A stretch of 64,000 nt of DNA, from NCBI GenBank assembly GCA_973895155.1, contig OZ316899.1:3971241-4035240 (forward strand). Direction: 5' to 3'. The stretch comes from Marsupella aquatica (Eukaryota; Plantae; Marchantiophyta). The notes below the pieces were generated by a model. That model searched no databases. It saw only the letters and a list, made by a program, of their open reading frames with translations, and was not told the DNA's origin. The position numbers and the translations under genes were made by a program. Shown piece after piece: positions 1,859-41,039 of this stretch (positions are counted from its first letter, which is position 1; each line of letters starts with the position of its first letter).

Positions 1859-1885
1859 AAGTGTGCAGCGTCCCCGCAAACACAC

Positions 1886-7951: not shown

Positions 7952-7967
7952 AAACTGTAAAGAGTTG

Positions 7968-7985
7968 TCCCCGGCAGCGGCGCCA
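7968..7985 (-). promoter_or_regulatory. Primer-binding site, tRNA-Asp type
   Basis: Minus strand TGGCGCCGCTGCCGGGGA, one mismatch from the Athila-type TGGCGCCGTTGCCGGGGA (complement of the plant tRNA-Asp 3' end). Confidence 0.88.
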
Positions 7986-7995
7986 AAAACAAGGG

Positions 7996-10900
7996 TGGGA
8001 CTCTATGTCAAACACTTGCCAAGGAGCTTAAGCGGCTTTTCTCCCCAAAAGACTACCTAATACCTGCTCCATGTCATACCAGGGTCACAAAGGATTGACA
8101 AAACTTCTGAAGTGTGCTTACAATGTCCAATCACTCCATACATAAGTAGTTTCAACTCTCCACTTCTAGAGAGGTAGTCCCCTTGACTACTTTTGTACTC
8201 ACCCCTTCCCCTCTCCTCTACTCCAAGGATCAGCAAGGGGGATCTCCGCTCCAAGCTGTCACCTTAGAGTAGATTCTCACACAAACACCCAAGAACCCAA
8301 AGTACTTTCCTCTTCAAGCTTAAGTCTCCTCAAGACCCTCAAAGTAGTGTTACCCCTCAACCTTGCCCCCCTGGCCTTGGTTTGGGTCCACACATCCCCT
8401 TTGAGCCCTAGAGAAGGCTCCTCTATCTAAGGACTCTTCCTCTTGTTCTTACTTCTTGTTAACACCACACACCAAGCAAAGTACTTTCCACCCTCAAGCT
8501 ATAATCCTCTCTAAGTCTCAAAGTAATGCTATACCTTAACCTTGCCTCCTTGGCCTTGGTTTTGTACTAGCACATCCCCTTCAAGCTTAGACCAAGATTA
8601 TACCATAGCATGGACTCTTCTCTTGCTCTCATATACTTCAAATGCACTCACACTTAATGGTCACAATGAAGATTGGTAAGTCTCCTTTTATTGCATCACC
8701 TTTACAACAAAAGTTCACTACACATTCTCCACACTAAGCATGGACCACCTCTCCTTTCTCAAGCTTAGCCCTACCTTGGCAAGGTAGAGATTTCACTTAA
8801 GAGATGAGACTCCCGGTCCCTAACAAATGAAAACTTCCTCCTTATATACTATCTCCTTCCACATCACACCAAGCTTGACCTGGGGTCCAACTATACCTCC
8901 CCCAAGTCCTCCTAACACACAAAGTCCAACTCTATAGTTCATAGCCCACCCTACTACTTGCTATTTTGCCTCCTTCCAAGCCCTGGAATATGCCACACAT
9001 GAGTGGTATGCTTTGACTTCCAAACCTACTCCCACTTATGGTCCTCCTCACCAGCTTACCAACCCACTTGAAAGCTCGCAAAAAGAGTGAGTGAGTCTCA
9101 AGTTGTGCCTAGTCAAAGTTGGCCTTATTTTACTTGTAACCCCTTTACTACCCTAAGTAAACTACCCCCTATATTTACTTTTCTTAACTTGATGGCCTTA
9201 CACCTTTGGCCAAAGGTAAGTACCCTTCTCTAGAGCCTAACTCAAGTGGTATGGGTGCAAGAAAGGTCAGCCCCTAAATCTGGTATTCATTCCCCTATGC
9301 CGACTTTGGTTTGCAAGTTGTCGGGACTCCCTCGTGGCCTCGGTTAAAAATATATTTGAGTGATTACTTTTCTGGGGTTCCACCTTCACCAGGGGGTGCC
9401 TTATCTTCCCCTAACTCAGCACAAAAAAATTTGGGCCCCAACGGATACCTCTAGCCAAAGTTATGCCCATTCTCCCAAGGCCTGTTTTTGGTGTAAAGCG
9501 GGTGTAAGCGGCGGCCCGATTACACTTACCTTACATGCCCCTTATGGGGATTCCACGTGTCATGAGGGGAGAGCACTCTCATTATACTCATGTTTCTTAT
9601 GAAGAAATTGTAAGGACAGCAATGTTTGCAGCCATTTCTCTCTCGTGAATTCAATCTAAAACCACAGCATTCTCTATTGGATTCTTTCTTGTGCAGCAGT
9701 CCAGCTGATCAGCCGCCAGCCCCTCAATTTCACAGCCACCATAGCTCACAGCCAGCCTAGTCAATTTCGCAGCTAGCCCACCTCTTCAATTTTGCCGCTA
9801 GCAACACAGTCAATTTCGCAGCTAGCAGCACAGTCACATCAGCGCATTTACAGCACAACAACAGCAGATTTGAAGCACAGCAGCAGCAACCATAGCTTGA
9901 TTCCTTCTCAGTCAAGCAGGTCTCTCTTCTCAATTTCGTAGCTGCCCACCTTTGCAATTTCGCAGCTAGCAGCAGCATCATTCAATTCAGCAGCATCAAG
10001 GCAGCAGCCAGCCAATTCTCATGAGCATCTCGTGCCTGATTAGTAGGAGCACCTCTAATCTAGTGTGCAGCTGTCATAGCAGCAAGCAGCCTTCCCAATT
10101 CAAAGCCAGCAGCGATCCTAATTTGCAGCCATAGCTCTTTTCCTTCTCAGCAGCCATAGCTTCTTCAATCAGCAACAGCCCTTGCTTCTTCAATCAGCAG
10201 CAGCCATTTCAATTCAGCCGCCCTTCCTTCAATTCAGCCGCCCTTGTGCTCAATTGATTCCTCAAGTAATCATGCAGCACCTTTGGACAGCCTCCCGGTG
10301 CTTGACGTCCTCACCAGCCTCGTGCTTGCTCCTCCTTGCCTCGTGCTCGCCGCGTGATCGCCGCCCACGCGGTTTACACTTAGAAAAAAATACATTTTTT
10401 TTTTGGAAAAACAGCATTTTGGGGCGATTTTGGACCCCCCTCCAAAACTCACACATAAGTCCAAAAGGACTTCTGAGTAGCTCCACTGATTCTATGGACA
10501 TAGGACTATGTCCGGGTTTACTAAGATATAAACAAAACCCTATAACAACTTTTCTAAAATTAGGCAAAGAGGGTCAAGTCTTTATGTCTTCCAAAATTCT
10601 TCTCAACTTTGAGATGCTCCCAAAAAGTAACCAAGTGTGACAAAGTTGTCCCACAAGTTTCTAGGGATAGAGGGGACCATACTTAACCCACTTCCAAACT
10701 TGGAACCCCTACATTTACCCATCAGCTATTTTTCCCGGGACCCGCTATTTGGTAACTTTGATTTTTGCCAAAATACTTATAACTCCTAGGTTAAGACCCC
10801 ACTTGACTTCATACTTTTTCAGGGTTCCCTAGGGACCTCCCAGCACCCATGGGAGAAATATCAGCCAAAAATAAGATGTCCGGTGTCGGGTCATTTTTCG

Positions 10901-11150
10901 GTCCCGACTTAGTCGCCTATTATAACTAAGGACGGAACTAGTTTCCTGCCCCTCCTATAGTAACTTGCTTACCCCTAGATAACTTTGCATAACTAAAATT
11001 CCCTCTTACCTCTACTAAGCTTCCCTTCTTACTTAAGTGCCCTAAACCTAGCTACTCTGATAGCACTAAAACTTTTTCCCTAACTATTTCCTCTTCTAAA
11101 CGAAAGAATGTCATGTTTCTCTACACTAGCTGACACTGAGCCATCCCACA
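7996..11150 (-). repeat. 5' LTR (~3.15 kb) of the gypsy element; PBS-proximal boundary approximate
   Basis: Right end set by loss of identity with the left LTR after CCCACA (11150). Left end placed at the nearest CA (TCCCA, minus strand) about 10 nt from the PBS. Contains a degenerate ~180-bp duplication (8282-8640) and a CAG/CAATTTCGCAGCTAGC-rich tract (~9640-10330). Confidence 0.85.
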
Positions 11151-12562
11151 GAGTGTGATGTTAGTTGCAATACTTCTTGTGAGTTTTGGGTGTTTGTTTG
11201 GATATGGTAGTTGTTGGCTCTAATATCTTGGAAACTTAAAAGGTTCCTTCTTGCTTTGGGGGCATATATGGCAGATGGGCATCTGATTATAGTGCCTCCC
11301 GGAAGAGTTAAGGTAGCTCTTCCGTGGCCTTCTTCTATTTGGCTTTCTCCGGTTATGGTGATGATTTGCCTTTGTGAGGGGATAATTTCGTGGAAATATT
11401 TTCTATCTCGGAGGATAGTGTGTGATGTTGCGCTGTCTATGATGCATACATCTATATCCTCTAGGTCCATTGGGGGGTCTACCATATGAATTTCTGGTAT
11501 AATCTCAGGTGATTCAAGGTAAACTCCATGGGTTTCATATTTTGATCCATCCAAACTTTGCTTGTAGAGTTTCACAAGATGGGCTGGGGCATGGCATACC
11601 TTTTGGGTGTGACCTTTTGTACCGCACCTGAAGCATGTGATTGAGCTGTTTGAGTTGTTTCTTGGCTTCTCTTGGTAGTTGTTGCGGCCTCGTTTCCATG
11701 TGTTCCTTCCTTGGGAGTTGTTTCTTCCACGGCCCCTTCCTCGGTTGCTGAATCTGCTGGATCCTCCTCTGTAGGAGTAGTTTGATCGTCCTCGCATCAT
11801 TCCTCTTCCCCTATATGAGCCTCTCCCCCTGAATTTACTTGTATGTCTATCATAAGGTGTGGTCATGTTAGCTTCTTTTTGTTTCTCGTTTATAATTAAG
11901 TTCGTCTCGGTGGTAGCAGGTATGGGGAGTGTACCCGGGGGTCTATCCTTTGCATTTGTCATGAGTAGGATTGAGTTTTGTTATGCCAAGAGCATGTGTG
12001 CTATTAATGCTGAGTATTTAGTGAATGCCATATTTCTATACTGGTTTGAGATTACTAAGTTTGTAGGGTGAAATGTTGCTAGTGTCTTTTCGATTTGTTG
12101 TTTATCATTCACTGGTTCACCGCACATTTGGAGTTTGTTCGAGATGCGGAACATCTCGCTGTTGTATAAGTCTACCGTTTTGAAATCTTGCACTCTTAAG
12201 GTTACCCATGCTTGTAGCGCGTTTGGTAAGTTTATAGTTGTTATGTGTTCAAATCTCTCTTTCAATGCATTCCATAGGAGCCTTGGGTTGTATATCGTCT
12301 TGTATTGTTGTTTTAATGGTTCTACTAAGTGGTGTCTTAGTAGGACTAATGCTTGTGCCTTCTGGTATTGATCCACCCCAATATCCGTATGTATGGTTTC
12401 TGGGATCCTCTTTGCCGTGAGGTTGACCTCCACGTCTATTGTCCAATCATTGTAGTTCTTCCCGTCAATTCTCAGTGCTGGGAATAACAGTTTCTCCATT
12501 GCCATCTTGGGGCTAATATGGGCTCGTGAGGTGTCGGGTGGGTATAAGTTTCTATTGTGCAC
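11151..12562 (-). pseudogene. Bianca-type Ty1/copia gag-protease (element A), interrupted by the gypsy insertion
   Basis: ORFs 11981-12562 and 11126-11962 are one frame split by a single TAA (11981-11983). Gag DGKNYNDW, CFRCGTKGHTQKVC knuckle and protease IIDSATSHTILRDRKYF resemble Bianca and are homologous to 34742-36270. Confidence 0.9.
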
Positions 12563-13085
12563 TTATTGTGGTTTGTAATCACTGGGAATGGAGTTTTGCA
12601 CTTAGCTGTTTTTGTGTATTAAACACTAAGACATATTCCATAAACAAAGAATCGGTACTGAATTCTCTATGAATCAAAGGTTACTATTTCTTATCAACAT
12701 CTACTCCTGAATTGACTAGCAATTGTCACCATATAACAAGTCTAGTAGTGAATTCCATGGAGTCTCAGAAGTTTGCAACTAAACTCAATCACCATAGGGA
12801 TCTCTTGAATTCATTTACAACTTTAAGCATATGCAGCTTTACTTCCATACAAAATATTCTACAATATTTTGTTAAAATGGAAGGAGGAGAATCCTACATC
12901 ACTCTCATTCCTGAGTTTCGGATTCCTCCTTGCTTACTCAGAGAATAACAAAGCTTAAGTACCTAAGGTAAGAGACACTAAAAGGTATGTCTTTTGGTAA
13001 TGAGAATCAAAAGATCACTCCTAAATAAGGGAAAAAAATACAATGAGTTCTCAAGCTAAACTAAACATTCAAAATTAAACTAAGA

Positions 13086-13362
13086 GACGCTGTTAAAATG
13101 TCGGTATTATGGTAAATTCTAATGGACGCTTCTGAGAGCGTCAAAGGAAGTCGGCCGCTTTGGGAATCGTCAGTATTAGGATGGACGCTTTTGGTAGTGT
13201 CGGGTGGAGATGGATGCTTCTGACAGCGTCGTTAGTCAAACGTACTCAGAAATAGTCGACACTGTTGAAGGCGTCAAGGGTGAATCACCGGGTCAGGGCG
13301 GACGCTTCTGAAAGCGTCGATAAAAAAATGGTCGGTGGTGGCAGACACTTCTGAAAAGCGTC
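13086..13362. repeat. Cluster of about 8 imperfect 18-bp palindromes GACGCT-N6-AGCGTC
   Basis: Copies near 13086, 13125, 13153, 13184, 13213, 13258, 13301 (GACGCTTCTGAAAGCGTC) and 13344. Confidence 0.75.
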
Positions 13363-13437
13363 CAGAATAGAACAAATACTTGAAAAATGCTCAAAATAAA
13401 CCGACTTCCAAGAAAAATGTAGAGGCCGCCATTCCAC

Positions 13438-14244
13438 AGTGACACTAAGGGAAACCGCCAAACGGAAACGGCGATATTTTCCCAATGGGAAGTCTGTTGG
13501 AGGACTTCTTGGGTGCTTTGGAAAGCTCTCAACAAGGGCTACGCCCTCCCAAGCTAAGCTAGGTCTAGGGGAACCATAGGTTCTCAGGGTTTGCGGGTGT
13601 TAACTCGCCCGCTTGCCAAATCCTGCCGAACAGCAGTCAAGCCGCGTTCAGTCTCCCAAGGGAGCTTACGTTGGGGAGGCAAGGCCAAGTAGGTGTGGAG
13701 GTTGAGTTCCAAGAGTGTTCGGCCCCTAGACCATCAATGAGGCAAATCGGGAGTTGGTTGCTAGAGTCGGGGCCATTATGGTCCAGGTGTGTTGGGACAA
13801 GCTTTAGGACAAGCTACGCTATTTGGGCCATGAGCATGTCCTGGGGTCAGGGCGGTCAGTTGGTGATGGATAGGTACAAGGGGGAACCCGGGCCGCACCC
13901 AAGGAAGGAGTTGTTCTAGACAAACAATGGGCGTGGGTTCTGGTTCCGGCTTAAGGCATCGGGAGGACCTATCGTTGAGCTTGAGTTAGGATGCTAGACT
14001 TGGCGAGTTCTAGATCCTGACGGGTTACTTACCAAGATGCTTGGTTGCTTGTGGAGACAGTGAGGACCGTTGAGTAACGGTCGTGTTGGAGAGCAAGTGC
14101 GGCTTCATATGGGAGGGGTCGCTGGCGGTGCAAGGGGCACTAGGGTGCTTGCTTGAGGTATTCCGTTGAGGCGTTCGGGCACTAGGGGCACTTAGGCGTG
14201 AGTGCTGGGATTGGTGAGGGCGCTGGGTGGCTAGGTTCACCACT
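13438..14244 (+). repeat. 5'-truncated LTR of the AGT...ACT chromovirus family
   Basis: Homologous to 41890-43067 and 50960-51790; ends GGTTCACCACT at 14244. Confidence 0.85.
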
Positions 14245-15879
14245 TGGTCCTTTATGTCTGAAGGACTTCACTCCTTCAAGGTGTGTCTGATTTTCTGAAC
14301 GTACTCCTTCCCTTCAAGGACTAAATTGTCCCTACGAATCCCTTCATATTTTTTATGAAGTGGTCCTCTTATGATCATCTCATTTAATAAGGGAAGAGTT
14401 TTTCAGAAGAGTTTTTTGTGTAGTATCGTGAAATTCTGTCAGTGGTGCCTGCAATTGCTTTTGAATCTACTTCAGTTTGTATTCACCCTTACCTTTTAGC
14501 CCAGTGTTTCCATAAGTTTTTCCATATAGTAAGTGGAAATAGTCCAATCCTGCAGTTTAGAGTAAATAGTGCTCTAGTTTGCAATAATTTTGGATCTTAC
14601 TTGCAGAGGATCTTACCTAATTTTGGATTTTTCTTGTAGGGTACAGTTTCCAAGGGTGTAGGCAATTCAAGCATGGGACATTCTGGAATACATAGAAGGC
14701 TATTATGAGTTTGATTCATGACATGTACATAAGAGTACACAAGCATTCCTTGCTCAGGATTGCTATTGAATTATTATTGTTTAGAATCATTTTATTGTTC
14801 ATAGGTTTTACTCTGAGGGTAAAGTCCACGGTGGCTGTTGTATATACATATGAAGTCAGGAAGTAAAGAGTTGTAAAGCAATGAGTGATATTTTGGATTG
14901 AAACTCAATCTTGCACACAATTGTGGACTATGTTGTGTACCAATTCTCTCCAAAAGATGAAAACTACATTCCAATCAGAATTTGTCACAACCCTCTAAAT
15001 TAGACAGAGCACCATCATTATCCGCCAAGCCTGTAGCATAGCCCTGTATTTAAACTTAATTTCCCCATGTGGCCTTGCACTCCACAAAGCAAACTTTAAT
15101 CTCTAAATGCCAAAGTATTCATTGCCATTTTCTCATTTCCAATGAACAATAATTAAGGACAGCAGCACCAGCAACTTGCACATCCATTTTATATTCATAG
15201 TAGACATAACTTGATATATTCTAGATGGCAGAATGTTTGTTCAAAGTTGTAGCCTTAGTTAAAATTATCCACCAGATCAATTTCCAGTGACTCAAACTTA
15301 GTTACTCGATCTAGTTTAATTGACTTAAACTTTTGGATCAAGTCATCCATGGCAATTACTACATGAGTTCATGATTCCAAGTCTGGTAAGGACACTTTTG
15401 GCTCCGTGCAAGAAGAGGCACGGTCTACCATCTCCATTTTGCTGCAATCAAGAATCAGTTCAGGGTTGTCAAAATATTTTTGACCCCCTCCCTCCCAATC
15501 CAATGAAGTCGCCTTCCAACTGTCCACTAAGTCATGCTATGTTGGGAACTATGCCGAGTCCTTGAAATTCCATGATCTGCTCTCATAGAGTTTCAATTGC
15601 TAGCAAACAAACTACCAACACAGAAAATAACAATCGAGAAAGGTCCTTTAGACTTCCTTGACAAGGACCATAAAAGGACAGAAACAAATGTGCCACAAAA
15701 CCGCCAACTTTATTCAAAAGCTGAAGATCTTCATAGATCTTGTACAAAGTCAACATTGAGATCAAACTCAAGTACTACAAGCGCGCGTGTAGTTTCCCAA
15801 AACTACAAAATAGCACCGTATCGTGCATCCCTTTGAATTAGCTTTTTGCCTCCCCGCTTTGACTGATGAATGCTAACTC

Positions 15880-17100: not shown

Positions 17101-20018
17101 TATGACTAATGTTCAGCCAGCAAGAAGTACCAATTGATCGATAAGAAATGGAAGATCAGATTTACCTTCCAACTTAATCCTCCATTTGATCAGAAAAGGG
17201 TATTACGCCGGCCTCTACTTGACTGCACCAAGAAACAACAGATACAAAAAATCTGATTCAATACCAAAGTCTACAAATTACACTGACAAACAAATTTGGC
17301 CATGCAACAAATGCATCATGGATATATAAAATTAAGTTTTCTCACTGTCAATCAAAGTGGACCATTGCCAAATTGTTAGTCCACATTCAAGAAGGAAGCC
17401 GCAATCTCTTTTTGGAACTGGCTGGTGGTGCAGAGGATTTAGGAGGGCCTTTCAAATCGAGCATTTTGTGGTATAACTGGATGTCCAGGGCCAACTCCAC
17501 CTAGCTCTAACATCTGCCTGAAGGAAACCTGAGACATGGACTTTGGGCTAAACAGCATTGTGAGTAGCTCTGGAGTTGTCAAAGGTCTACTTAGCACCTT
17601 CCTAGTTGACTCCAAAGCCCTCATTCCTTTCCCCAATTCCCGACCCTCAGTTTTGGGTGTCAAAAGCCTACCTGTAGACTCGCCATCTTGGTTATCATCT
17701 TTCTTGGACTTGTTTCCCAGATTTTGTGACATGGGACCCGTCTTCAAAGCAAGTAGCAACGTTTCACCTTCAGCTTGGAGGTTTGCCTGAATGCACCCAT
17801 GTAACAATATCAAGAGTCAATGCACTATTGGAAGAGTTTAAAATTGGAACAACCGCTTGGACTATCCAATTAAGCGCAGGCAACAACAAAGGAATTGATA
17901 GTGCATCACTTGTCTCATTTTCCATACCTGTTCATGCACAATTTGGATCTGCTGTACAAGTTGTCTCCTATTGAAAAGATCAATGCTTGGCGGCCCATAG
18001 TACACTCTTTTCATGTGATCTATGTAACTTACTTGCCTCTGTTCTCCGTGCGTGGGTAAGCCCCATGTTTGTAACCAATCATCAGAAAATGGTAGCCCAC
18101 AAGCTTCACACTTAGGAGGGGGTATTTACAAACGACAGGAACCAGGAAATAGTAACAGCAAACAGTTACTGTTACCAGGAGAAATGGAAAAAAGAACATG
18201 GGATTGAGCTCCATTATTTGGTCAAGAAGTTAAAAAAAACCCATCAATAAACCCCATTTTCAGTCGTTTTCAATACCACCATCCAATTGTCAAGGAAAGT
18301 AGGGGCCATTAGAATAAAGGTGTTGCCGAAAACCGGTGATGGCCAGCGCACAACGGTAGTATGTCGGCAGGGAAGGGCAAAATTTAGGTATTCATAAAAT
18401 AACGAAAAAGATGGAGATTCTACGTAACGTCAATCGAGAAGAGAACAGTAAACTTAACGACCAATAGAAAAAGGCGTTGCCAAAACATGCGGATATTAGC
18501 AGCGCCCAGCGCTAGTATGCTGGAAGAGATTGTCCGTCACATCAATCGAGAAGTGAACACAGGAAACTCAATTTGAAGCATTTCCAACAAACAAAGGCAA
18601 TGGCAGACGTTGAATATTTTCAGCGATGGCCGCTACATTAAATGTCGGACCTCAAGAAATCAACGTCTAAACACGGAACACAATGACCATAGGCAGCGCT
18701 CGGCGCTAGCTCAAATCTAGGAATCAATGAATGACCATGAAAGAACAAGAGAGCCGATCCAAAAGTGCATTCCTTAATTCCAAAATTGGTCAAAACATAT
18801 AACCGGTATTACACCATCCGCAGATCATCTTCAAATCAACCCACGGCAAAACATGAACATAAGCAGCGCTCGGCGCTAGCTAAAATCTAGCTATCTTAAA
18901 TGTAGCCCGCCCTGGCCCGTATGTGCTTTATCTCGACCTGAGCCGCACATAACAGGGCCGCTGATCCAAAATGGGCCAAAGATGGAGCCGGAAATACATG
19001 AACTTAGAATCACCTATAGAAGAAATCCCACGGTCCAAGACGAACAAAAGCAGCGCTCGGCGCTAGCTTAAATGGAAAGCCTATGGCCACTGAAGCTTGT
19101 GTCACTGAAACCATCTCCGTCGTGATTAACTTTAGCTCTGCGACTGGCAGTCGTCGTCGATGCCCGCCCTGGCACGTCTGTGGTTTTGCTTGAAACCTAG
19201 ACCCCTGAGACGCACATAAGAAGACGAGGGGCGCCGAAACTCCGAACTCTGATTCCCGGGGTCTGGAACATTTGTATCTAGGAAGTCAACACGTCCCAGT
19301 TGCTCTTGTACTCATAGCTCAATAGGCTGAATACCATCAGCAGGAACGAGAGAATGAAACAAAAAACGATCAACAACTCCGAGCGGAGTGTCCCGGTCAT
19401 TAATCCAAGGTAAGTTCCTCTCCCCGGGACTAATCGCCTCATCATAAGGAAGAGAAAAACAATTCCGGAAGGTCGAGGTCTCGCTGGATGTGTCACCATG
19501 AATGGACTCGAAGGAGCTAAAGTGACTCTCGTCCGGTCAAACTCTGGAAGGAGCAAAGAAGTCAAGCATCTCCTCCAAAGACATGATCTCCTTCTTCTCC
19601 ATCTGGTGGGCACTGGTAAACGCAATCGAAGCTAATGACAAGACCGGTGGTGTTGAAAAGACTCGACTTCGAGAGAGGTTGTGTTCGAAATACCTTGCAA
19701 CAGCGACCCAATGGAGAGTTTAGGTTCGGAGATCCGAAAAAACGTATCACAGAAAGGTTCAACGCAAAAAGGACCGTTGAGAAAGAGACGACTGTTCCGA
19801 GAGCGACAAAATATGTGGGGCCAAGGAACGGACGGAGGATTCAAAATTCGCAAGTAGAAAAATAGACGTTTGGGGAGCGCCCGGCGCTAGTAAGGGAAAT
19901 AATGAATTTAATCCATTTTATTATCAATGTAATGTAAACAAATCATATGTAATATGATAAATAAATGGATTAAGATAACAGCGCCCGGCGCTGGTAAAAT
20001 GTAAGCCAAAAAAACTCT

Positions 20019-23000
20019 TTAAGAATCGGACAATTCCGATTCAGAGCTCTGTGACCTCTCGGTAGAGACCGCCTCATCATCTACATACTTGCTCCTACAA
20101 ACGTCGTCTACATAAGGATTTCGGACAAATTTCCTATCAACTCCTCTTCGTAGCCGGAGACCTTTGTTTTCCCAACAAAGAGTCCTCTAATTGTCTTCCA
20201 TTCTTGCAGCATTCTCAGCGTAAGAGGGTAACACAAATGGTTTCTCCGGAGTGACAATTTCAAAACGAGCTACCTTTCTTATGAGTTTGAAGCGTCTTCT
20301 CGTATTCCATTCGGACCTGGGTGAGAACAGAAGTTCGTCAACCGATTGTATGAATGGATATCACAAAGCCATGAAGGAACTGGAAAGGAGAAAGAAGCTT
20401 ACGAGTTTCAGAACATTACTCGGAAGAGTCATCGCTGTCACTCTGGCCAGCGGATTGTTCCTGACCCTTCCCCTCAGGTGTGCCATCTTCATCTTCGTCT
20501 GCTGTACCACCACTTGACTCATCGTCAGAGTCAAAATTGAGTACAGAACGGAGCTTGTCCCTCTTTTTCTTTTCGGGTGGCTGAATTGGGGGTGGCAAAG
20601 TTTCGACTTCCTTTGGAGAAAGTAGATCTAAGAACACCTTGGAACCAGTCTCAACGAAATCTTTCCTATTCTCCACTCCAATTACAAACCTCCCAGAATA
20701 GTCTCCAGCTACAAAAGAGTTGCCCGACCCCACTGTCCAATCCATGAAAATATCCCTCGGACGAGTGATGAGCTCAATCACAGATTGCATGAATCCAACA
20801 GACAATCGGGCATTTCCAGCAAATTCCATCTCAGGTGTTGGATCGACTTTGAGAGAGGGAAGTCCAATTAAATTTGTTATTGAGGGATCTTCGGTGGCAG
20901 ACAGAGGTCTAAACCTCGAGTCTTTTGGCACCTTCCCTTTTTCAGACAGTCGAGAGAAGACGTCCAGCCTCAGCGTGAAGATCTGTAATATAACCCAAGC
21001 AAGGTATGTCAATGGATGCATTTGTAGACAATTTTTTAACGGAAAACCAGATGTCACGATGAGAAATTTACCTGTCAATCAGTCTTCGGCGCGTACATTG
21101 GAACTGACAAGACAACATTGTGTGACGAGATGCAATGAAACTTCTTTGAATCTTGACAAGCCGATATAACCTGAGACATCGGATCGTATTCCCCGTTATG
21201 TAAAATGGCCAGCATTCCGTCATCAGATAAAAATGGGTCCATTCCACGAAAGAAAGATGTGGTCAAAGTGTGGTCAGGGACATTCCATTTAGGAACTTTT
21301 CTGTCTAGCAGAGATGGTTTAAGTCCTGTTGGAAGGTAAATGAAACCCGCGTGGACCCCAAAGGATCTCTCCTTTCCACCACGCACAACGCCCTTCTCTC
21401 GAAAGCCAGACTTCATGAGATCCTTTCCCCACTTCTCTACACCATTCACCCAGTCAGGCTTCTCCCCTTTGTTAAACGTTGAGTCGTAGAATTCTGAGAT
21501 GCTAGATTCAACAAGGCAATGCCTTGAAAGTCTACTCTTGAAGTCCCCGACTTCGCGTTGAAGACCTACAGCAGCAGCACTTTCTCGAGAAGAAGATCCA
21601 CCTTCAATGGTCCTTTTTCTCTTCTTCCTTGTACTGGTAGCATCCACTGGAGCGATCACCTTCCCTTTGTCGGTGGGAGTAATTGGATCGGATGGTGCTC
21701 CGGTATTGGCTTCTGAAGCCTCTGGGGTGGCATCTATCTTTGTATCTCCGCTCCCCACGGCGTCCGACTTTCTTCCTGTTCAAATGGATGTCGACGTGAT
21801 ATCCGTCAATAAAGAGACAACGACAATGCTAACGCCCAGCGTTGGCCAAACTATCATAAGACTTGGCCTTAAATATACATCTTTCCGAGTAATAAATACC
21901 AATTCTGTTTCTAAAACAATGACTCTCATAACAGCGCCAGGCGCTAACAATGTAACAGATTTGGACATAAGCAGCGCCGGGCGCTAACCAAATGATATTG
22001 ACAGATATTGACTGCCATAGCAGCGCCGGGCGCTAACCAAAGGAAACAAATTATACTTACGTTTTTTCCCAGATCTTGTTGATTCACTTGGGGCCGTAGT
22101 ATCTGCTTTTGCTTTGGCGCGAGGCTTCCTGCTTCGGTCAACATGAACAATTGTTGTCTCGCATATTGTTTGCAATTCTGTTGTGGATTGATCCACATCA
22201 TCCAAAAGCCCCTGCTTCATGTCAGAAACAACGTTGACTGGAATCTGGGACTTAGACAGCTTATGGAAAGCATCCTTTTCTCTGTGATCAAAGGGAGAGT
22301 CCCATCTATCTGTATCCAGGTACCATGGACAATGGGTTCTCTCCCATTCACTCAAAGGTCTTGCTGGGAAAATTCCCTCGGTAGGATACATAGAATACAA
22401 TTCAACTAAAGAATTACTCTCCGGTATGACAGTCCACTTGAGGAAGGCTGCGGGATACGCCCAGAAGTAATCAGGATTGGTAGCCTCCATGTGGATGTAA
22501 AAATGGTAGAGATACCGTTTTGCTCGCTTCTGGTTCTTCAAAGAATAATCCTCTTTGTTAGGATACTTCGAGGGCCACATTGTATTAAAAAACTTACCCT
22601 TGACAGAGTCACCGTATTTCCTAAAATCATTCGTAACTATTTCAATGAGAGATTCGAATGATTCACATGCCCAATCTTGTAAGCGATTCACGGGAATGGT
22701 TTGTTGGACCTCTCGTAGAGCACATTGCAACATCCCCACCGCAATCCCTTCTACATTATTCCATGTAATCCAAGTGTGACACCACTGTTTGACTGGATCA
22801 TCATTGACGCTATTCGGATGGAAGAATTGTCTCCGGAGCTCCGGATTGCAATGTGCTACAAGCAAAGTACTTCGTAGCTTGGCGTCAAGAGCCAAAACAG
22901 CTGTAAAAAGCCTGGCCCGGTCCATGGTACACAACACGGTATCTGGTTTCTTCTCTCGCTTATTCCTCTCCGTGACAGCATACATCTCTGCGCACGTAGA

Positions 23001-24267
23001 TAGAAAGTCCTCAAACTTTGGACTCAACAAAGGAGTGATTTTCGAGGTCTTAACTGCCCATTCCTTGGTTGCTTCCTTCATCATAACGGCATGCCTTCTG
23101 GAAACCTCCTCGACCGACCAAGGGGTACCGAGGGTCGCAGCGGACTCCATGTCAATCTTGAACTGATTCGAATACGACTTAATCTTATCCTGACATAGAA
23201 TGTACAAAAGAGCCTCCTGAGGCATCATCTTTGTGTACCAGGATCCTTTTCGCGTCTTCACCCTGATCTACTCAAACTTCTTGTAATTTGCAGGGTCGAT
23301 GAGCTTACTATAGTACTCCAGGTCGTGCATCAAGACCCGCTTAATTCGATCGGCATCTAGGATCCAGGAGGGTTCCACAACTGCTTGTCCTAGCCTGAAA
23401 TAAAAGAACGAAATGAGAACATATAAGCAGCGTCGGGCGCTAGCAAAAAATTGCCTCGAAAAGTTATGCTAGAAAGAATGAACAATTCATAATGACTCAC
23501 GAAGTTTTGCACAAAAGGGTATCTTACTGGTTAACGGTGTGCATAGCCGCTTCGATTTCTATCAGAGAACCCTTGTCGCCATTAAAAACAGTACAAAGCA
23601 CACGCGGGTGGTACTTTGGGTTTTCGGGACTCTCTTGAGTGACAAGAGTCCACGAGTAAAGCCTATGGTTCCCGTCAAAAACTGAGAACATTCTGTCTTT
23701 CAAAACTAGAAAATTTGGGTCGGCAGCACATTCTTCCTCGAATTTCTCGTTCTCAGATGTCCATATTGGATCCCAACTCTCACGAATTTCTTGAGTACAG
23801 GTGAGAAGCGCTCCCTCAGCATCGGTAGGTTGAACGTAAAACCTCATTCCAATCGAAGAATTGTATCCCATGCTACGGAAAGAGTCTTTTAGCTTGTCGA
23901 TGGAAGAACTGTCTTTCTGTAGAGTTTGGACAACCTCCATATGCACCAATTGACATAGTGGAATTCGTGGAGGCTCTTTGTCAAACCCTCTGAAATCCTT
24001 CCCAAACGACATGACATGTTTTGAAATAAGATCCGTCTCGGAAAACGAAACATCTTGAATCGCAAATGTGTCAAGATTCTCCATCTTCTTTCTCGCTGGT
24101 TTGGCAAACGAAATACTTGAGATTGGAACAAGCGATGCGGTGGACCTCGTTACTCGACGCGTATACACTAAACCAGAGAATGAAGACTCAGAAGACTCGC
24201 AATACCCACGATCCTGATCCCCAACCACACTATACCCCCTCGACGAGGAGGGGATTGCATCCATCAT
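20019..24267 (-). pseudogene. Five-exon ~1212-aa gene: N-terminal ParB/Srx-like domain, helical middle region, beta-class N4/N6 DNA-methyltransferase-like domain, acidic tail; three nonsense codons
   Basis: Exons 24267-23528, 23394-22061, 21775-21072, 20982-20420, 20316-20019; all GT-AG introns with compatible phases. VFDGNHRL at ~23660-23680. FIYLPTG (motif IV position, ~21324-21344), FLSDDGMLAILH, then DIFMDWTVGSGNS...GRFVIGVE (motifs I-II, ~20722). Stops: TAG 23268-23270, TGA 21075-21077, TAG 20187-20189. Confidence 0.78.
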
Positions 24268-25412
24268 CTTTACGATGAAAGGTGTACGAACGGAATCCTC
24301 ACGACTAATTACCAATTCTCCGTACCATATTAACAGTTGTGTCCGTATTATATCCGATCAATGAGCGCTATTCCCCTCTTTGTAATCGGTTGGAGAGACG
24401 TTACTCATTGCGAACGACAAGATTCAATTTAATTTATCAGTGACGGAAAGCGACAACTTAGAAATTGCGATAAGTATTAATGTGAACTACGCTAAAATGT
24501 TTGCGTGATAATCACGATGAACATTAGTTACTATTAAAAGTTACCGTTGTCTCAGCACCTTGCGGACAAACATGCAATGCCAGCGCCGGGCGCTAACGAA
24601 TAAGAGACTACCAAATTGAAGAACTTATTGGTGAACAAATGCTAGCGCCCGGCGCTAGCCATTTGAATAATTTCATTAACGTTCTTTCTAAGCAACATAT
24701 ATTGTCAACAAACTCCTAAATGTACCTGTTTCACCTGTAGTAACCAAATTTTACTTAATATTATGAGATTAAATTTATTGTATCAATAGTAGCGCCTGGC
24801 GCTAGTAAAATTTTACTATATTTGCAAAAATATTTCGTGTGTAATTATGCTAGCGCCAGGCGCTAGTCATAATACTTTTCAAATTATGTCATTGTTATTA
24901 AAATGGCTTTTAGGTAGCGCCCGACGCTAATGAAATGGACGCACTTGTATAGACTACTATCTAGTCGTATTCATGTAATAAATATTCCTGACACCCGCAC
25001 TTGACGGGCAAAAACGACAAATGTATCATTTATGATTTCAACGGACGCAAAGTTGTGCGTGTTCTATGTCGTATTGAAATGTCTCTTTCAACGGCCGGTG
25101 GTCCTCGAAGGGGTGTTATAAGCACAAGAAATACGGTTGGGATTGGGCTATTGCATGAATTACTTCTGCCCTAAACTTCTTTCGTCTACAATGTCGCGCT
25201 CAATTGTTATTACACGTGCTTGTACCCGGGAAGTCGTCAAAGTTCCCGTGCAGGTTTCTGATACTTACAGGCAAGTAAGCGAGAACTATCTGTGCGGGAG
25301 ATTCGATTTGAGAATCAATGACATTCTGTCGATTGTTCCTGAGGAGTCATCGAGTGGAGGACATGAACCAGCTGCGGCATTTGATGTGGATGACTGAATA
25401 CGTTTCTGGCAC

Positions 25413-28400
25413 ATGAATGTAGGACTTCGTTACACGCTTCATGTCCGACCTACTCCTCTTCAATCGGTTGTTCAGGACATTCCGCCCCAGGTTGTTGAAA
25501 TATCTGAGAGTGAAGATGAGGAAGTTGCGCCCAATCCTCCTAAGAAGCACAAAGCTCCAAGCTCTAGTTGCCTTAAGAGTGAACCGGTGGCCACTTCCAC
25601 TGCAGATGTCCAAAAGGTCTACAGGCGGAGTGCAATGGACGCCTTACTCAAGGCCACCGGCCATAGTGAATTGTCAAGATTTATGTCGGCAGGGGACTTT
25701 AGACACGATCAAGTTCCTTGTTTGCCAAACAAGTACAACGGAAATATTGTATTTGAATTGCCTCCCATTGTGGGAATGCAGTCCAAAGGATCTAGATTTC
25801 GTGACATGGACCGTGCCAAAGATTGTTACATTTGGACCAGGATTTTTCCGACGACCGTAAACGTGCAACCAAAGAAACACTGGGAGTTTGGTAAAGTCAG
25901 TTGTACTGGGTTCGTCGAGTGCAGGAACAAGTCTTGTGAATATTTTTTGCGAAAGAAGAGATGCAATTCTAAAGCGTGGGCTGGTACCCCTAAGCTTAGT
26001 GGCCAGCATGTGGTGGGTTCGCTCATTGAAGAGGGTGGTATAGTATGTCACTACTGTGAAAAGATTCCTTTTTGTGTGGACTCTTGCCCTGCTCGCTTGT
26101 TCTATATGTATCCACAGGTCCTACTTGATACAGCAACCTGTAGTCACATGTCTCGGCTCGCGGTACATATAGGTGAACATAATCATCCGAGTAGAAAAGT
26201 TTTCTCGAGGAGTGCTGAAAAGATGGCCGAGGACTTAATAAAAAGAAATCACGAAGCTAATCCTCTTGCGAAACCGGCTGGGATTTTGAATTCGGCGACT
26301 GGTTTGCTTGTGAAAGCTCTTTGCGAGAACGTTGACAACATCGTAGATATTGAAGAAACCGAAATTTGGAAGTCTCTCATGGTTCTATCTACTCCTCAGA
26401 AATTTGCGTCCCTTTGTCGCAGCGTTCGAATGGACCAGGCTGGTCGTGGTGAGTTAGATTTCCTAGCTCGAATGCAAAGGTCAAATAATATTTCTTTTCT
26501 CCAAAGGTATCTTCTTCCGGGTCAGGGTTGTTTAGCAGATCGTCCCCACATATTCAAAATGTCAGTGAAGGGTCATGGATCTGGTGTAGATCTTTTACGT
26601 CAGATGCAACCTGGCGGAAGACTGGAAGGGGCTTGGGTGAGTTTTGATGTCATGAAACGAGTGACAACCGACTGGTTTACTTTTAGCGCACACGTTTACG
26701 ATCACAACTTTCGAGCTCTTTGTACAATATTCACATGCGAACTAAAAGCTGAAGACACAGAGTCCTTTGAGAAGGCATGGAGAATTATGATAGAGGTTTG
26801 TAAGGAAAATGGGTTACATGAGGTTACCATTCAAGGTTTTATGGCCGACAATGCTCAGGCTGGATGGATTGCTGTTCGCAATGTCTTTTTTGGGGGTCAC
26901 CCAGACCCTGAACGTGAACGCTCCGATGCATTCCACTTTTACCAGTCTTTCCATCGACATTCCACCGAGGGAGTACTCAAGGGTAGGCAACCTGAACATC
27001 TAAGACTATGGGAGAAATTGCGAAATGCTCCATCATTCGTTGCTGCGTACCGAGTTTCTAGGGAGATTGTGTTATGGTGGCAAGCAGGCAACTGTGTTCC
27101 AGGGAAACTGATGATGTTGCAGAGTTGGATATCATGGTGGGTTGTTCGATGGCGTCAGTGGGGGAATTTCATTCGCGTGGTAAGTTTTATCAATGCTTAC
27201 AATAGTCACTTCGCCAGGTTTTTTACTAGCGCCTGGCGCTGCTTTTAACTGTACAGATGCCAACATTATATTATTACATCATGCACAATGCTAGCGCCTG
27301 GCGCTGCTTTTAACTGTACAGATGCCAACATTATATTATTACATCATACACAATGCTAGCGCCTGGCGCTGCTTTAAACTGTACAGAGAACTTTGCCACA
27401 TTCATGACTTATGAACACTTGATAATACCAACATTACCGTAATATATATTATATACATTGCTAGCGCCTGGCGCTGCTTAAACAAATTGACTAAAGTTGG
27501 TCTGGATCCACTTCATTGTAGAGCAAAAGCGCAGAAGAAGGTGCCCTCATTCCAAACTGTACAGGTTCTGAGTCAAGGCACGCTTCAATGAAAGCATGGG
27601 CAACCAAAAAAATGGTGGGCCTCTTCGAAGCATGCGAGTTGATCAAAATCGGGCTATATCTCAAGTTGCAGGTTACAGTGCATATCGGAAAGGACTCAAT
27701 AGAGGGAAGGGGCCAACTATCTGGGAATTGGCATTCCGTTCGGCAGACCAAGCAGGTTCACCCAAGTTATTTGAAGAAGCCACTAACATGATTCTTTCCA
27801 ACTCTGCCGATTTTGATCTGGGTAGGAATTCTCCTCTGAATGGAGATATTGTCACCAAATCGGTTAAGAGGAAGGGACTTGCAACTGGGATTGTCTCGCC
27901 ACAAGACTCCCATCGGCATGACACCATTCTCATCACTACCCCAAATACTCGAGGATTCAAACGGAAGAATCTCAACAAGACTGAGTTCACTTCCATTCCC
28001 GCCAATGTAGTAGATCCTGTAGTAGACCTCTGCGGGAGTGACACTTCAACAAGTGAAAGCGATTCCCTTGCAAACACCCCTGAAGCCACGAGGGAAACAA
28101 CATCATCTCAACAACCACGCAGTGCCCCCGCTGTGGTTCAACGTTTGCCGACAGAATCAGCTCCATTGGAAATGGACGTTCCAAGAGGAAGCTGGCATTT
28201 GAGATGGACGGCCAAATATGGGGCAGGGCCACAGTGTAATGGGACCTTGCATGGAAATTCTGACAGAGATGAGTGTTGACATCGTGTCAAGAAAATAGGG
28301 TTGCATTCTGCTGCCGGTGTTGTCAGCATTGTTGTCAGCGGACATCGGATTTTCAGAGGAACTCCCATTGCCGAAATGATATGGTTCTGCCCAAACAGCA

Positions 28401-29047
28401 CATGCTACAAGAGCCGCCCGCGTCGTGGTGTTGAACGCCTTCCTCCTGTACCGGACATCCTGCTAGTTGTGAAAGGAACAAACCTTTCGCCTGGAGAGAT
28501 AGAGTACCTTCAAGCGCAGGGAGTCTCTATGGTCCAAACAGCTACGCCCTCTCGAACTCGAACTGCACCATTTGCATTCAACTTGAGAATCAATGTTAAC
28601 ACATTTCCAGAGAAAATCAATTTTTCGGAGCCCAACGTGCGCCTTCGTAGCAGGAATGGGAGGAACTCCAGACCTCGCTCTAATCTAACTGTGGCTCATA
28701 GTAAACAAATGGAGTCGGCTCGAAAAGAAGCTATGACTCTGGATGGAGAGTGGGATGTGATTAGTGGAATTGCTTATGGGAAACAATTCAGAATACGGAC
28801 TCACGAGAACCTTCGATCACCAAACACTTACTTTGTCCAAATGTGCATCTTCCCTACTTGTTCCTGTGAGGATTTCTTCCGTCGTCATTCCCGCGGCAAG
28901 CCGTATATGCCCTGTAAACATTTGTACTGGGTGTTCATAAATGTCTTCAAGTTTCATGTAGAGGAGTCTACCCTGTGTAGCCAGCCGATTTTGACAGTTG
29001 GAGAAGTCAGACTTGTGTTGGAGAGGCACAACGCAAATGGTTTATAG
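25413..29047 (+). pseudogene. MULE-type transposase, ~1097 aa: GCM/WRKY-like Zn domain, DDE core, C-terminal SWIM finger; one frameshift and one nonsense codon
   Basis: Exons 25413-27179 and 27522-29047 (GTAAGT...TGTAG, phase 0; true start uncertain). SCTGFVECRNKSC...CHYC...CPAR...HIGEHNHP; D at 26646 (SFDVMK); D at 26847 (FMADNAQA); SDAFH at the CxxH position; E at 27570 (SESRHAS); SWIM CSCEDF...CKH. Frameshift ~27636; TGA 28277-28279. Confidence 0.85.
27222..27390 (+). repeat. 65-bp tandem repeat (~2.5 units) in the transposase intron, one palindrome per unit
   Basis: CTAGCGCCTGGCGCTGCTTTTAACTGTACAGATGCCAACATTATATTATTACATCAT... repeated, motif starts at 27228, 27293 and 27358. Confidence 0.92.
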
Positions 29048-29701
29048 AGGGACACGATTTATCCTTAACTGTCGTATTCCATAACGGATACTATGTTGTT
29101 TTGTCTTTAGTCAACGGATATTACTTTAGTTTTTTATGTGGTTTTGGTTAGCGTCGGGCGCTGGTCAATAACTTATTTATAAAATTTTGTTTTTTGTGGT
29201 TATTGCCATTGGATGGTTCCATAAGCTTTTATTATCGTCCCATTATTCTGCGTACTTAATCCTTTGTTAGCGCCTGGCGCTAGTTTCACACTCTGCCTGA
29301 CAGACCCCTATGTTTCCGATAACATAATTCAGTCCACAACTGGCTTTGTGGTGGGTCCCGCCTGAGCATACTCCATTCCTCCATGGGTATTATGGTTAGC
29401 CTTTTTTTAACCACACTAATGAAGTATATGAACTAAATGAAGCATTTAAAAGTGGACTGTTTAGAAATGTTGCTGTATTTAAACAGCAGTGAATTGAATG
29501 ACAACCCTTTTTTATCTATAATCTGAGCAAGTGACAATGGATTGGAACCTCTTCGAGCAACTGTGAGCACACTTTTCCCTTAGATCTGACGTCGTGTCTT
29601 ATGCCAGTAGGAATATTTTTAGCTTAAGTATGTGGTTGTTCCTTACGTGAATTTTAGAAAAACTTTGCCAAATAGTACACTTTTACAATAACAATTTCCT
29701 G

Positions 29702-34741: not shown

Positions 34742-37700
34742 ATGGCAACATTGGAGAAATTGCATTTTCAGGCCCTTTCAGTAGACGGCAGCAACTACCT
34801 AACGTGGTCAGTAGATGCAGAAACATATTTTGCATCACTGGAACTCGAAGATACTTTGATAACTGATAATAATCTGACACTACAACAGAAGGCTAAGGCC
34901 GTTTTCTTATTACGCCAGCATTTGGCTCCTCCACTCAAAACCCAATATATGAACGAGGTCAACCCACGCCTACTATGGGATAAATTAAAATCAAGATTCG
35001 ACCATATGCGCGAAGTCTGGCTCCCAGAAGCCCGCCGTGATTGGTATAACCTGCGAGTGATGGACTACACATCAATAGCCAGCTACAACAGCGCATTATT
35101 TAGAATCACATCCCAATTGGAGTTGTGTGGCCATCCGGTCCCTGATGCAGATATGATCGACAAAACACTAAGCACACTCCCAGAAGCAAATATAGCCCTC
35201 GGTACACAGTACAGAAATATGAGATTTATAGTCTACTCAGACCTCATTGCACATTTACTGGTAGAAGAGAAGCAGCAGACCGTTGCCCTGCAGAACGCTA
35301 GAAAATGACCTGCAGGATCAGCCCCACCACCACAAAAACCAGAAACAAATTATAATATGAGAAACCAAAGGGGACGACGCAGATCAAGAGGCAGAGGCGG
35401 ATATCAAGACAAAAGCAGGAATCAAAATCCCAGAGGCCGAGGAAACCGTTTTTCATACAACTCACGGGGTCGAGGAGCAAGCGGCCGAGACAGCAGACGA
35501 AACACCCCACCTGATAACATCAGAGAAGATAGGCTGTGTTACCGGTGTGGTAAAATAGGACACATAAAGAAGAACTGCTGGGCATCAGACCAAGCAGCTA
35601 AACGACATACAGAAGCAAGGGCCCAATTAAAGCAAAATCCAGAAGGCAACTATATGGAGATGGAGGAAGACTTAGCTAACTATCAGGACCCAGAAGAAAC
35701 ACCTACACAACAACCTGAAGAACAGGAGACCCATATGGTAACACCAGCATCAATACACACCTCATTAGATGACCCCAACCTTGGGATAATTGACAGCGGA
35801 ACATCACATACAATTCTTAAAGACAAGAAGTACTTCCACAGTATCACCCCATCTACACGATCAATGACCACAATTTCGGGTATAAACCAGATAGAAGAAG
35901 GTAAGGGAGCCGCAACAGTGACATTCCCACAAGGAACAATTATTGATATTGATGCAGCAATCTTTGCCCCACGAGCTACTCAAAATTTGATAAGCTTTCG
36001 GGACGTAGTCGCTAATAAATACCAACTGCGAACGGCAAAGACAGATGAAGAGGACACACTACAAATTTTGGAGATTACCAATGATGGAACCAATATTAAA
36101 GAGACATTACCACTCATACCCCCCGGTCTCTATGCGACTCAAATTACTGTAAATTATTCTACAACTGAATCATCAGAAATAACACACCTATGGCACTACC
36201 GACTGGGACACCCAAGAGTAAATATGTACCGGAGAATTATCAAGGACTCCAGAGGAATCCCACAAGGAGTTGTGACGCCAATGACATGGTCCTTATTTTG
36301 TAATCTGATTAAGTAGGTTGCTGTATGCAAGGAGTAGCTATTGATATTACATAACAATTAGCAAGATGGCAAGAATAAGGGCAATCATGGCGTTAAGAGT
36401 AGGGAAATAAAAGCTATGTCGCAGGTGGTCGATGACCATATCTCTTTCAATATGTCACCAAATCCGGATCTGTAAAGAGCATTGGAAAGATCTGGTCAAG
36501 GCGAGTAAAATCGATATAAAACACTCGGGAAACAGAGGTGTATTAAGAAAGATACGGCCTGATTAGTGTGACGGGTTAACTTGTGGTCGGAATTAGCGGA
36601 TTCGGCTTCAGTTTCGGGTTAACCCAAGCTCGACCACGGCTTAGCTTATGTGAGCACGGCTTCAGCTTAGCTCAGGTCAGCACGGCTTCAGCTTAGCTTA
36701 GGTAAGCACGGCTTCAGCTTATCTCAGGTAAGAACGGCTTCAGCTTAGCTCAGGTCAGCACGGCTTCAGCTTAGCTCAGGTTAGCATAGGTAAGCTCGGA
36801 TTCGGGCTCAGCTTAGGCTAGGTTAGCGGATAGCGGATAGCGGGTAGCGGCCTAACCCGAGACCACGGGTTAGCTCTACTCGGGTTAGATAGGATAGCTA
36901 GGTTAGCCAAACTCGGGTTAGCTATGTAACTCGGGTTAGCGCAGCAGTGAGTACCCCCTCTCGGTTGCGGGGGCATAACTCTCTATGTATTTGACCAAAT
37001 TGGCTATAATTGACCTCGTTGGAAAGAGGAGCTCAAGCCACTTCCAACGCTGCTATCCACGCAGAAAATGGTTAAATAGAGAAATCGGGAGAGGAGGCGC
37101 AAGCTCGCGAAAACCATGGAGGAGGGCCGAATCCGAAGTACATAGCCAATTCGAGATAGAAATAAAGTTGCGAGTTAGGGTTCAGTAGTTAGAGATAGTG
37201 GCGGCTCTGTTAGGGCTGGGATGGGGCTCCAGCAGCGTAGTACCCAGCCATTTGGGCTCAGTATGAGAGTATATAGAGCAGCCCCCCGGTAGAGATGGGG
37301 GGGGACTTCAGTTGTGTGATCTCACTTAGACTGAGTAGCGGGGAGGAGCTCTATGCAAGCAAGGCTGGACTTGGACGCTGCGTGTTGGGGAGAGCTTGGT
37401 TGTGCTATTACTCAGGGAGTAATCAGCCAAGCTTCACAGCAACGGGTTGCTAGGTTTGTGAGCTGGATTGTGGCTCTTTCTAGTGGGCAGCACAACTGGG
37501 TTCTTTTCCCCCGATACAGAGCCTTGGTGATAGGTGATGTATTGGTGATTGTAAACTGTGGGGAGGATTTCAATTCGATTTGCGGTGGGCACATTAGGGA
37601 GGCTGAGGTACTGATTAAGGGGCAGCAGGAGGAGCATTTACAGTTCAGTCTGGCAAGGCTACGTGATCCATGGGGAGTCCCGGCCTTTGTCTGGTGGAGA

Positions 37701-40678: not shown

Positions 40679-41039
40679 AAAAATATTATAAGGCAACAAA
40701 TGGTTTCCCCATAAGGCTGATGCAAACCAGGTTGGTCTGCACATTCTAGACTTAGGAAATTCCAGCCTATCCCACTTATCCAAGTAGGATGTCAGTCCGA
40801 GCGGGTAAGCCAACTCCAAACTCGTTGGACCCTTTGTTCTCCCCTTGGGGTACTCCCCTATAGTTTGAACTAACCAACCCACAAATGTGAGGCGAGCACT
40901 ATCAACTTCCACTCGCAAAATGCAAATTAGCCCCCCAACAACCTCTAGCACCCATGCAATTTGACTTTATTCTTAAGAGGCCGAGAGGAGTGAAACTAAG
41001 ATACAACTCACAAAGGTAGCCACAACTGCCTGTACCAGT

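Follow-up and report, generated by a model that had tools for sequence, protein, structure and literature searches.

A decayed transposon gene from the liverwort Marsupella aquatica and its predicted ParB-fold, methyltransferase-like product

What is a gene that appears to join a ParB-like domain to a DNA methyltransferase-like domain doing in a liverwort, and whose gene is it? The question is raised by a stretch of 64,000 nucleotides (nt) from Marsupella aquatica (NCBI GenBank assembly GCA_973895155.1, contig OZ316899.1, positions 3,971,241 to 4,035,240 of the forward strand), which we call the window. On its minus strand, between positions 24267 and 20019, lie four long open reading frames (ORFs) and a short last one, and an earlier note, made from the letters alone, had read them as a domesticated eukaryotic gene for an intact fusion protein of 1212 amino acids (aa). 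The answer reached here is that the window copy is very probably dead and derives from an accessory gene that a multi-copy DNA transposon carries, and that the intact protein combined a ParB fold with a degenerate methyltransferase-like module. The ancestral gene is reconstructed with five exons and a product of ~1200 aa, made up of a ParB/Srx domain, a central region of ~450 aa and a C-terminal beta-class methyltransferase fold.

The first step is to ask whether the gene is intact. The five-exon model runs from 24267 to 20019 and amounts to 3639 nt, or 1212 codons and a TAA, the size given before; its exons and four introns reproduce those of the earlier note exactly, and no frameshift was found across the five exons. 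What did not stand is the description of its pieces as open. Three in-frame stops interrupt the model, one each in exons 2, 3 and 5: a TAG at 23270-23268 (codon 289), a TGA at 21077-21075 (codon 925) and a TAG at 20189-20187 (codon 1157). At these positions, homologues read Q, I and K or S, respectively. Exon 2 of a homologue on an environmental eukaryotic scaffold (L001) is uninterrupted through the position of the first stop, and nearly all other genomic copies, seen in contigs from four public runs, have a G at +21077 that gives CGA (Arg), not TGA. Because of the three stops, the window copy is a pseudogene, lightly decayed by nonsense mutation, and not the source of an intact 1212-aa protein. 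As it is written, it could encode no more than 288 aa, which cover just the ParB/Srx part, and the locus is a dead copy without a function of its own. Two splicing detours were considered and rejected: an in-phase acceptor at 23263 that would skip the first TAG would also remove 44 conserved residues, and no good donor avoids the TGA.

Does the gene belong to the host? That the locus is an intact, domesticated host gene for a ParB-methyltransferase fusion is very improbable, even though its introns are canonical and phase-compatible, its frame is free of shifts and its protein sequence is conserved in homologues. To the three stops is added the fact that the gene is highly repeated: in the four public runs, 753-1441 short contigs, which form three identity classes, align to the 4.7 kb that contain it (window 19800-24500). 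It also lies within an element. A transposase-like gene stands head-to-head with it, and the same divergent arrangement is kept in two loci of another liverwort, Riccia sorocarpa. The window ORFs are 40% (E 4e-125) and 37% (E 9e-48) identical to the transposase-like gene of Riccia locus L002 and 41% identical (E 1e-128) to that of Riccia locus L019. Retrotransposons of the Ty3 and copia types surround the gene, and palindrome arrays, discussed below, run through the element. The gene is a transposon accessory (cargo) gene, and the repetition and the conserved pairing with a transposase-like gene replace the idea of domestication. Of the 31-mers of 19800-24500, roughly half are present at high depth in the runs of each of two differently coded organisms (A and B), so the family is plentiful in two or more related genomes or strains.

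The next question is whether the gene is eukaryotic at all. Its four introns all begin with GT, end with AG and join exons in compatible phases, and three of them can be followed into L001, whose exons are, in order, 48, 33, 31, 43 and 35% identical to those of the window. Intron 1 has the identical position and phase 2 in both (after the N codon of AMH..N plus two bases) and is at most one codon away from its counterpart in an annotated Riccia sorocarpa gene model. In both the window and L001, intron 3 (phase 0) comes directly after the same Q codon, and the L001 counterpart of intron 4 has the same GTAATGTTC start, the same phase and nearly the same place. Intron 2 sits in a low-complexity linker, and the comparison covers introns 1, 3 and 4. 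That these three are kept in the homologue indicates, at the level of sequence, that the introns are real and spliceosomal and the gene eukaryotic, as the earlier note had held against contamination; comparison with homologues, a check that it had named, supports the junctions of three of the four introns. The four public runs look like genomic DNA, with introns covered, contigs of 110-220 bp and no canonical junction.

Contamination from bacteria or phages, or horizontal transfer in the very recent past, would explain why both domains are of typically prokaryotic kinds, and ParB is found with PF01555, the methyltransferase family in question, in phage ParB-terminase loci (PMC4738411). The likelihood of such an origin is nonetheless negligible in view of the four spliceosomal introns, three of them shared with a homologue, the plant-type Ty3 and copia elements that flank the gene, the 450-aa central region found only in eukaryotes and the homologues annotated on a liverwort chromosome. 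An exhaustive profile search gave 303 relatives at E <= 1e-3, most of them fragments about as long as an exon; searches by part gave one homologue for exon 3, four of compatible length for the central ORF and five for exon 4. A metagenome scan gave two short loci, both without the methyltransferase part.

What did the N-terminal part of the protein look like? An AlphaFold2 model of residues 95-246, built on a 63-sequence alignment, has a mean predicted local distance difference test score (pLDDT) of 95.1 and a predicted template modelling score (pTM) of 0.89; an earlier run on a two-sequence alignment gave a pLDDT of 35.6 and was discarded. When the model was searched with Foldseek against the PDB, the best 40 matches were all ParB, Noc, KorB, PadC or sulfiredoxin (Srx), with a probability of 1.0. 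Among the AlphaFold models of Swiss-Prot, YopQ came first, followed by ParB, Noc, Spo0J and plant sulfiredoxin. VIA-align gave Z scores of 8.0-8.4 over 91-97 residues at 2.6-3.0 A for the CTPgammaS-bound Caulobacter ParB (7bm8), Noc (7ol9) and the CDP-bound ParB (6sdk), and a Z score of 6.8 for Arabidopsis Srx. The predicted structure thus supports a ParB/Srx fold, which had been called before from the letters: the Foldseek and AlphaFold checks proposed at that time yield a confident model, ParB-type matches throughout and no good match outside ParB, Noc, KorB and Srx.

A motif DGNHR is nearly invariant in the relatives (75 of 79 motif-bearing matches) and falls, in the model, in the turn between strand E100-104 and helix H106-118. 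Judged by topology, DGNHR would be the counterpart of GERR in ParB, the G-x-x-R phosphate-binding turn. Some weaker leads deserve mention. Pfam scans of individual members gave weak matches to DUF1015 and DndB, four members each, families which we take to belong to the ParB clan. When the ParB-like alignment was compared by hhalign with one plasmid ParB, the match fell short of significance (Prob 2.7), and the IPL..L start was aligned sensibly. The ESM Atlas offered, as a lead only, DUF3723 with ParB-clan neighbours, which is in keeping with a ParB fold; its other leads, Dynein_C and DUF6589, had low recognition and are probably noise. In the protein P0142 (1176 aa; GCA_014529385.2), the ParB-like module is fused to another domain at the C-terminal end, of NIF/CTD-phosphatase-like type (PF03031, E 2e-12), so the N-terminal module pairs with different enzymatic tails.

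The C-terminal part can be approached through exon 4, and then through both of its halves together. Against PF01555, exon 4 of the window copy scores 19.6-20 bits (E 7.5e-4 to 1e-3), below the gathering score of 26.7 bits. Its best relative reaches an E value of 1.4e-6, six of the seven members of the exon 4 family match PF01555, and a precomputed match to it is present in three relatives. With phmmer, exon 4 matches DpnA (5hek) at an E value of 4.7e-4, and a profile of the seven sequences matches DpnA (3.6e-7), CcrM (4e-4) and M.MboIIA (2e-3) in the PDB. To cover exon 3 as well, the spliced exon 3 and 4 family alignment, with an X at the stop, was compared by hhalign with 11 annotated PF01555 enzymes, namely, E. 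coli YhdJ and phage and plasmid methylases; three of these enzymes were verified against Pfam, and 9 of the 11 carry DPPY or SPPY. The alignment spans 210 columns and both halves, with query residues 55-277 on residues 27-260 of YhdJ (Prob 96.2, E 2e-9). A weak exon 3 match to Atu1531 (2qpv, E 0.007) did not reappear with the profile and was set aside.

In the hhalign columns, DWTVGSG falls on DPFaGSf, IGVE on IGIE and YLPT exactly on DPPY. This means that the half with motif IV precedes the half with motifs I and II, which is the circular permutation of the beta class. The motifs that bind S-adenosylmethionine (SAM), D..vG.G (motif I) and IGxE (motif II), are recognisable in the fold and align to the DPFxGSG and IGIE of DpnA and YhdJ. 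These comparisons support the view that exons 3 and 4 encode a beta-class, PF01555-like amino-methyltransferase fold. They agree with the earlier note on the class, on the retained motifs DWTVGSG and GRFVIGVE, on the order of the motifs and on the YLPT that stands where (D/S/N)PPY would be expected.

Is the odd catalytic loop then a result of the decay of this copy? Five sequences were compared at motif IV. The window and P0158, which are 63% identical, read YLPT, L001 reads SLPN, and the two Riccia sequences P0024 and L019 read DMPS and DIPT, for a consensus of [D/S/Y]-[L/M/I]-P-[T/S/N]. Compared to the canonical (D/S/N)PP(Y/F/W), all five lack the first proline and the aromatic residue; the strand before the motif (vD..F.) is kept in each. 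Since the loop is degenerate in every relative examined, its degeneracy is, on this alignment, a family trait and not decay of the window copy. It points to a module that is a pseudo-enzyme or at least non-canonical, and the suspicion of a dead catalytic loop raised by the first reading is supported by the relatives, none of which keeps a DPPY-like motif.

The intact members could be active methyltransferases all the same, making N6-methyladenine (6mA) or N4-methylcytosine (4mC) with an unorthodox loop and marking the transposon that carries them, at the palindromes or close by. In the clade of the window, motifs I and II have been retained, and several members keep D or S at the first position of motif IV and P at the third. 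However, every sequence is missing the first proline and the aromatic residue of that motif, and one Riccia copy (L019, 9183-9915) has lost motifs I and II as well (AHSGES, VGLTD). Similar loops are linked with inactivity, as in the case of EPPL in METTL14. Activity at the transposon is thus unlikely here, even with the role that has been proposed for algal homologues (PMC12477816). The module is more likely to be a SAM- or DNA-binding pseudo-enzyme than a canonical writer of 6mA or 4mC, because the base-contacting loop appears degenerate across the family.

What might such a protein recognise? The palindrome AGCGCCnGGCGCT, its core often extended to GCTAGCGCCnGGCGCTAGC, is present at 21 sites in the window compared to 0.05 expected. 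All but one of the sites are non-coding (20 of 21), including those in introns 1 and 2 of the ParB-like gene; the exception, at 27228, overlaps the final codons of the ORF at 25413-27248. Two of the three diverged relatives examined have arrays of their own, of different palindromes, in equivalent places. In Riccia L002, GGCGGAnTCCGCC occurs 18 times (0.03 expected) and flanks the ParB-like gene (span 1545-15097), and in L001, GTTAACGGnnCCGTTAAC has 13 sites (0 expected), which lie upstream of the ParB-like gene and inside introns 2 and 3 (span 7-5304). The arrays are found upstream, downstream and, in two of the three families, within introns of the ParB-like gene. Some of the sites are part of tandem repeats of 65-75 bp, such as 27228, 27293 and 27358 in the window and 80, 155, 230, 304 and 379 in L001.

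Reasoning from ParB, Noc and KorB, proteins that bind parS-type palindromes, we expect the intact protein to bind the palindromes of its own element, perhaps in a nucleotide-dependent manner, and so to carry the methyltransferase-like module to the DNA of the transposon. One could go further and suppose that DNA transposons of bryophyte-type plants carry a eukaryotic ParB/parS-like system, in which a spliced ParB-fold protein with a dead SAM-binding module reads a palindrome specific to its family. This wider idea is tentative and, at present, somewhat doubtful. If true, the palindrome has been seeded through its own element, including the introns of the gene that encodes its reader. Such a system would enable the element to recognise its copies and to tether or shield them, for instance, by tethering the element once it has been excised or by counteracting or mimicking host silencing, and the protein and its site would coevolve as in bacterial partition systems.

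A different binder would also account for the arrays. The palindromes may be bound by the transposase or another factor, with the ParB/Srx domain acting as a nucleotide-dependent enzyme (a nuclease, kinase-like or Srx-like) rather than a site-specific DNA clamp. ParB/Srx folds include the kinases SerK and SbnI and sulfiredoxin, which are also among the structural matches, and subterminal repeat arrays in DNA transposons are common transposase sites. The palindromes do change with the ParB-like family in three lineages, yet the transposase-like gene co-varies with the ParB-like gene, so the change does not discriminate between binders. The best structural matches are, on the other hand, the DNA clamps ParB, Noc and KorB, and there is a published parallel in the red-algal protein PAG3 (10.1101/2025.02.11.637652). 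All in all, a different binder is a rather unlikely explanation, though one that carries real weight.

Several observations count against the reading of the gene as a transposon-borne, palindrome-binding ParB relative with a methyltransferase-like module. Pfam gave no ParBc/ParB_N (PF02195) match above threshold for the window or 63 relatives, HMMER-level searches of the PDB sequences with the single sequence and the 63-sequence profile did not reach ParB, and the ParB/Srx assignment comes from a predicted structure. The CTP-binding signatures of ParB, GERR/GERRxR and ENLQR, are not conserved as such in the N-terminal domain, and no helix-turn-helix (HTH) domain was recognised in the protein, which also favours a different binder. 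HMMER searches with the exon 3 half gave no methyltransferase match, the N-terminal half of the methyltransferase assignment is drawn from one profile-profile alignment, and motif IV was sampled in five sequences. Riccia L019 has no perfect 6+n+6 palindrome array, and, given the co-variation described above, the palindromes could equally be transposase sites. Simple scans gave no convincing terminal inverted repeats for the element.

The remaining features of the locus are collected in Table 1. Pfam gave no match for the central region of ~445-450 aa. After an acidic, low-complexity tail, the protein ends with a motif (N)PYVDD / YVDDEA that is kept in three lineages. The transposase-like ORFs matched no Pfam family and nothing in the PDB, with only a sub-threshold SWIM match (E 0.2). 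The window as a whole is dense in transposable elements, and its uninterrupted Ty3/gypsy ORF may be that of a young, intact retrotransposon.

Table 1. Coordinates of the ParB-like gene and of its surroundings (window positions unless a homologous locus is named)
Feature	Position	Strand	Details
Exon 1	23528..24267	-	ATG at 24267; low-complexity N-terminus, then predicted ParB/Srx-fold domain with DGNHR motif
ParB/Srx-fold domain (predicted)	aa 95-246 = 23530-23985	-	AlphaFold2 and structural matches
Intron 1	23395..23527	-	133 nt, GT..AG, phase 2; one palindrome site (23429)
Exon 2	22061..23394	-	Central region, ~445 aa, no known domain; in-frame TAG 23268-23270
Intron 2	21776..22060	-	285 nt, GT..AG, phase 1; three palindrome sites (21933, 21973, 22022)
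Exon 3	21072..21775	-	Basic/low-complexity linker, then methyltransferase-like N-terminal half; motif IV position YLPT 21327-21338
Exon 3 stop	21075-21077	-	TGA, in-frame, one codon upstream of donor
Intron 3	20983..21071	-	89 nt, GT..AG, phase 0
Exon 4	20420..20982	-	Methyltransferase-like C-terminal half: motif I DWTVGSG 20722-20742, motif II IGVE; then acidic tail
Intron 4	20317..20419	-	103 nt, GTAATG..CAG, phase 2
Exon 5	20019..20316	-	Conserved C-terminal tail (PFVLPSYAE..., NPYVDD); in-frame TAG 20187-20189; TAA 20019-20021
(N)PYVDD/YVDDEA motif	window 20070-20130; L001 ~6200; L002 14102-14131		Conserved in all three
Palindrome span	18501..29281	.	21 copies of (GCT)AGCGCCnGGCGCT(AGC), all those in the window
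Transposase-like gene	25413..29047 (ORFs 25413-27248, 27596-28279, 28301-29047)	+	Homology to Riccia neighbours
Riccia transposase-like genes	L002 7483-4038; L019 1800-229	-	Head-to-head with ParB-like gene
Ty3/gypsy polyprotein ORF	1886-7951	-	Uninterrupted, 2021 aa: gag, zinc knuckle, reverse transcriptase, RNase H, integrase
Copia-type gag/integrase/reverse transcriptase fragments	34742-40714; 11126-12562	+; -	Pol_BBD, gag_pre-integrs, rve, RVT_2

Why does this family matter? The window locus itself is ordinary, and the family is moderately interesting. Proteins with which a transposon reads, and may also mark, its own DNA form a newly recognised class, described in 2025 from brown and red algae. 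The present work extends the class to a land plant, with named relatives from the liverwort Riccia sorocarpa, and backs the ParB assignment with a structure predicted at high confidence. That motif IV is degenerate in all five sequences argues against the simple idea of a "self-methylating transposon," and palindromes that differ by element family give a direct handle for binding work. The earlier caution about novelty was well placed, since ParB-like and methyltransferase accessory proteins of transposons have already been described (PMC12477816; 10.1101/2025.02.11.637652).

Among enzymes and host genes, the comparison is as follows. The beta-class PF01555 enzymes DpnA (5hek), CcrM (6pbd), M.MboIIA (1g60) and YhdJ share with the window family the circular permutation, motifs I and II and the helix-turn-strand after motif IV. 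The family differs from them in its motif IV, in its sub-threshold score and in having the domain split by an intron. Prokaryote-type amino-methyltransferases are also found in a bryophyte lineage as MpDN4MT1a/b of Marchantia, N4-cytosine methyltransferases of sperm whose activity has been shown (10.1101/2021.02.12.428880). These are, however, expressed host genes with a canonical TSPPY, and the paper, with which the comparison is by description only, mentions no ParB domain. Iyer et al. described the methylases of prokaryotic ParB-terminase loci, as well as fusions of ParB-HTH with Dam in chlorophytes and chytrids (PMC4738411).

The bacterial ParB, Noc and KorB proteins are CTP-dependent clamps (7bm8, 6sdk, 7ol9, 8qa9). 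The likeness lies in the predicted N-terminal fold, in the G-x-x-R turn (DGNHR compared to GERR) and in the association with arrays of 13-20 bp palindromes. In contrast to these proteins, the window domain has no sequence-profile match, carries a helical insert of ~50 residues and does not conserve GERR or ENLQR, and the protein has no recognisable HTH or C-terminal dimerisation domain.

The closest parallels are other transposon proteins. The accessory protein of the Ectocarpus element Sola1-1_Ec32 has 1104 aa with ParB-like DNA-binding and N4C/N6A DNA methyltransferase domains, and the same work refers to green and red algae for such proteins (PMC12477816). It has the same order of the two domains and a similar size, its gene and that of the transposase lie on opposite strands of a large DNA transposon, and it has been suggested to bind the element that carries it and to modify that element. 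Likened here by description only, it comes from a brown alga and a Sola-1 element; the window copy is a pseudogene. In the red-algal Plavaka elements, PAG2 combines a PF01555 methylase with SET and PAG3 combines a ParB-like domain with a 2-oxoglutarate oxygenase, and inverted-repeat arrays adjoin (10.1101/2025.02.11.637652). As in the window, ParB-like and PF01555 modules are carried as cargo, tandem inverted-repeat arrays lie by the ParB-like gene and self-binding has been suggested. The Plavaka modules, however, reside in separate proteins with other partners, whereas the liverwort gene has both fused and has palindromes in its own introns too.

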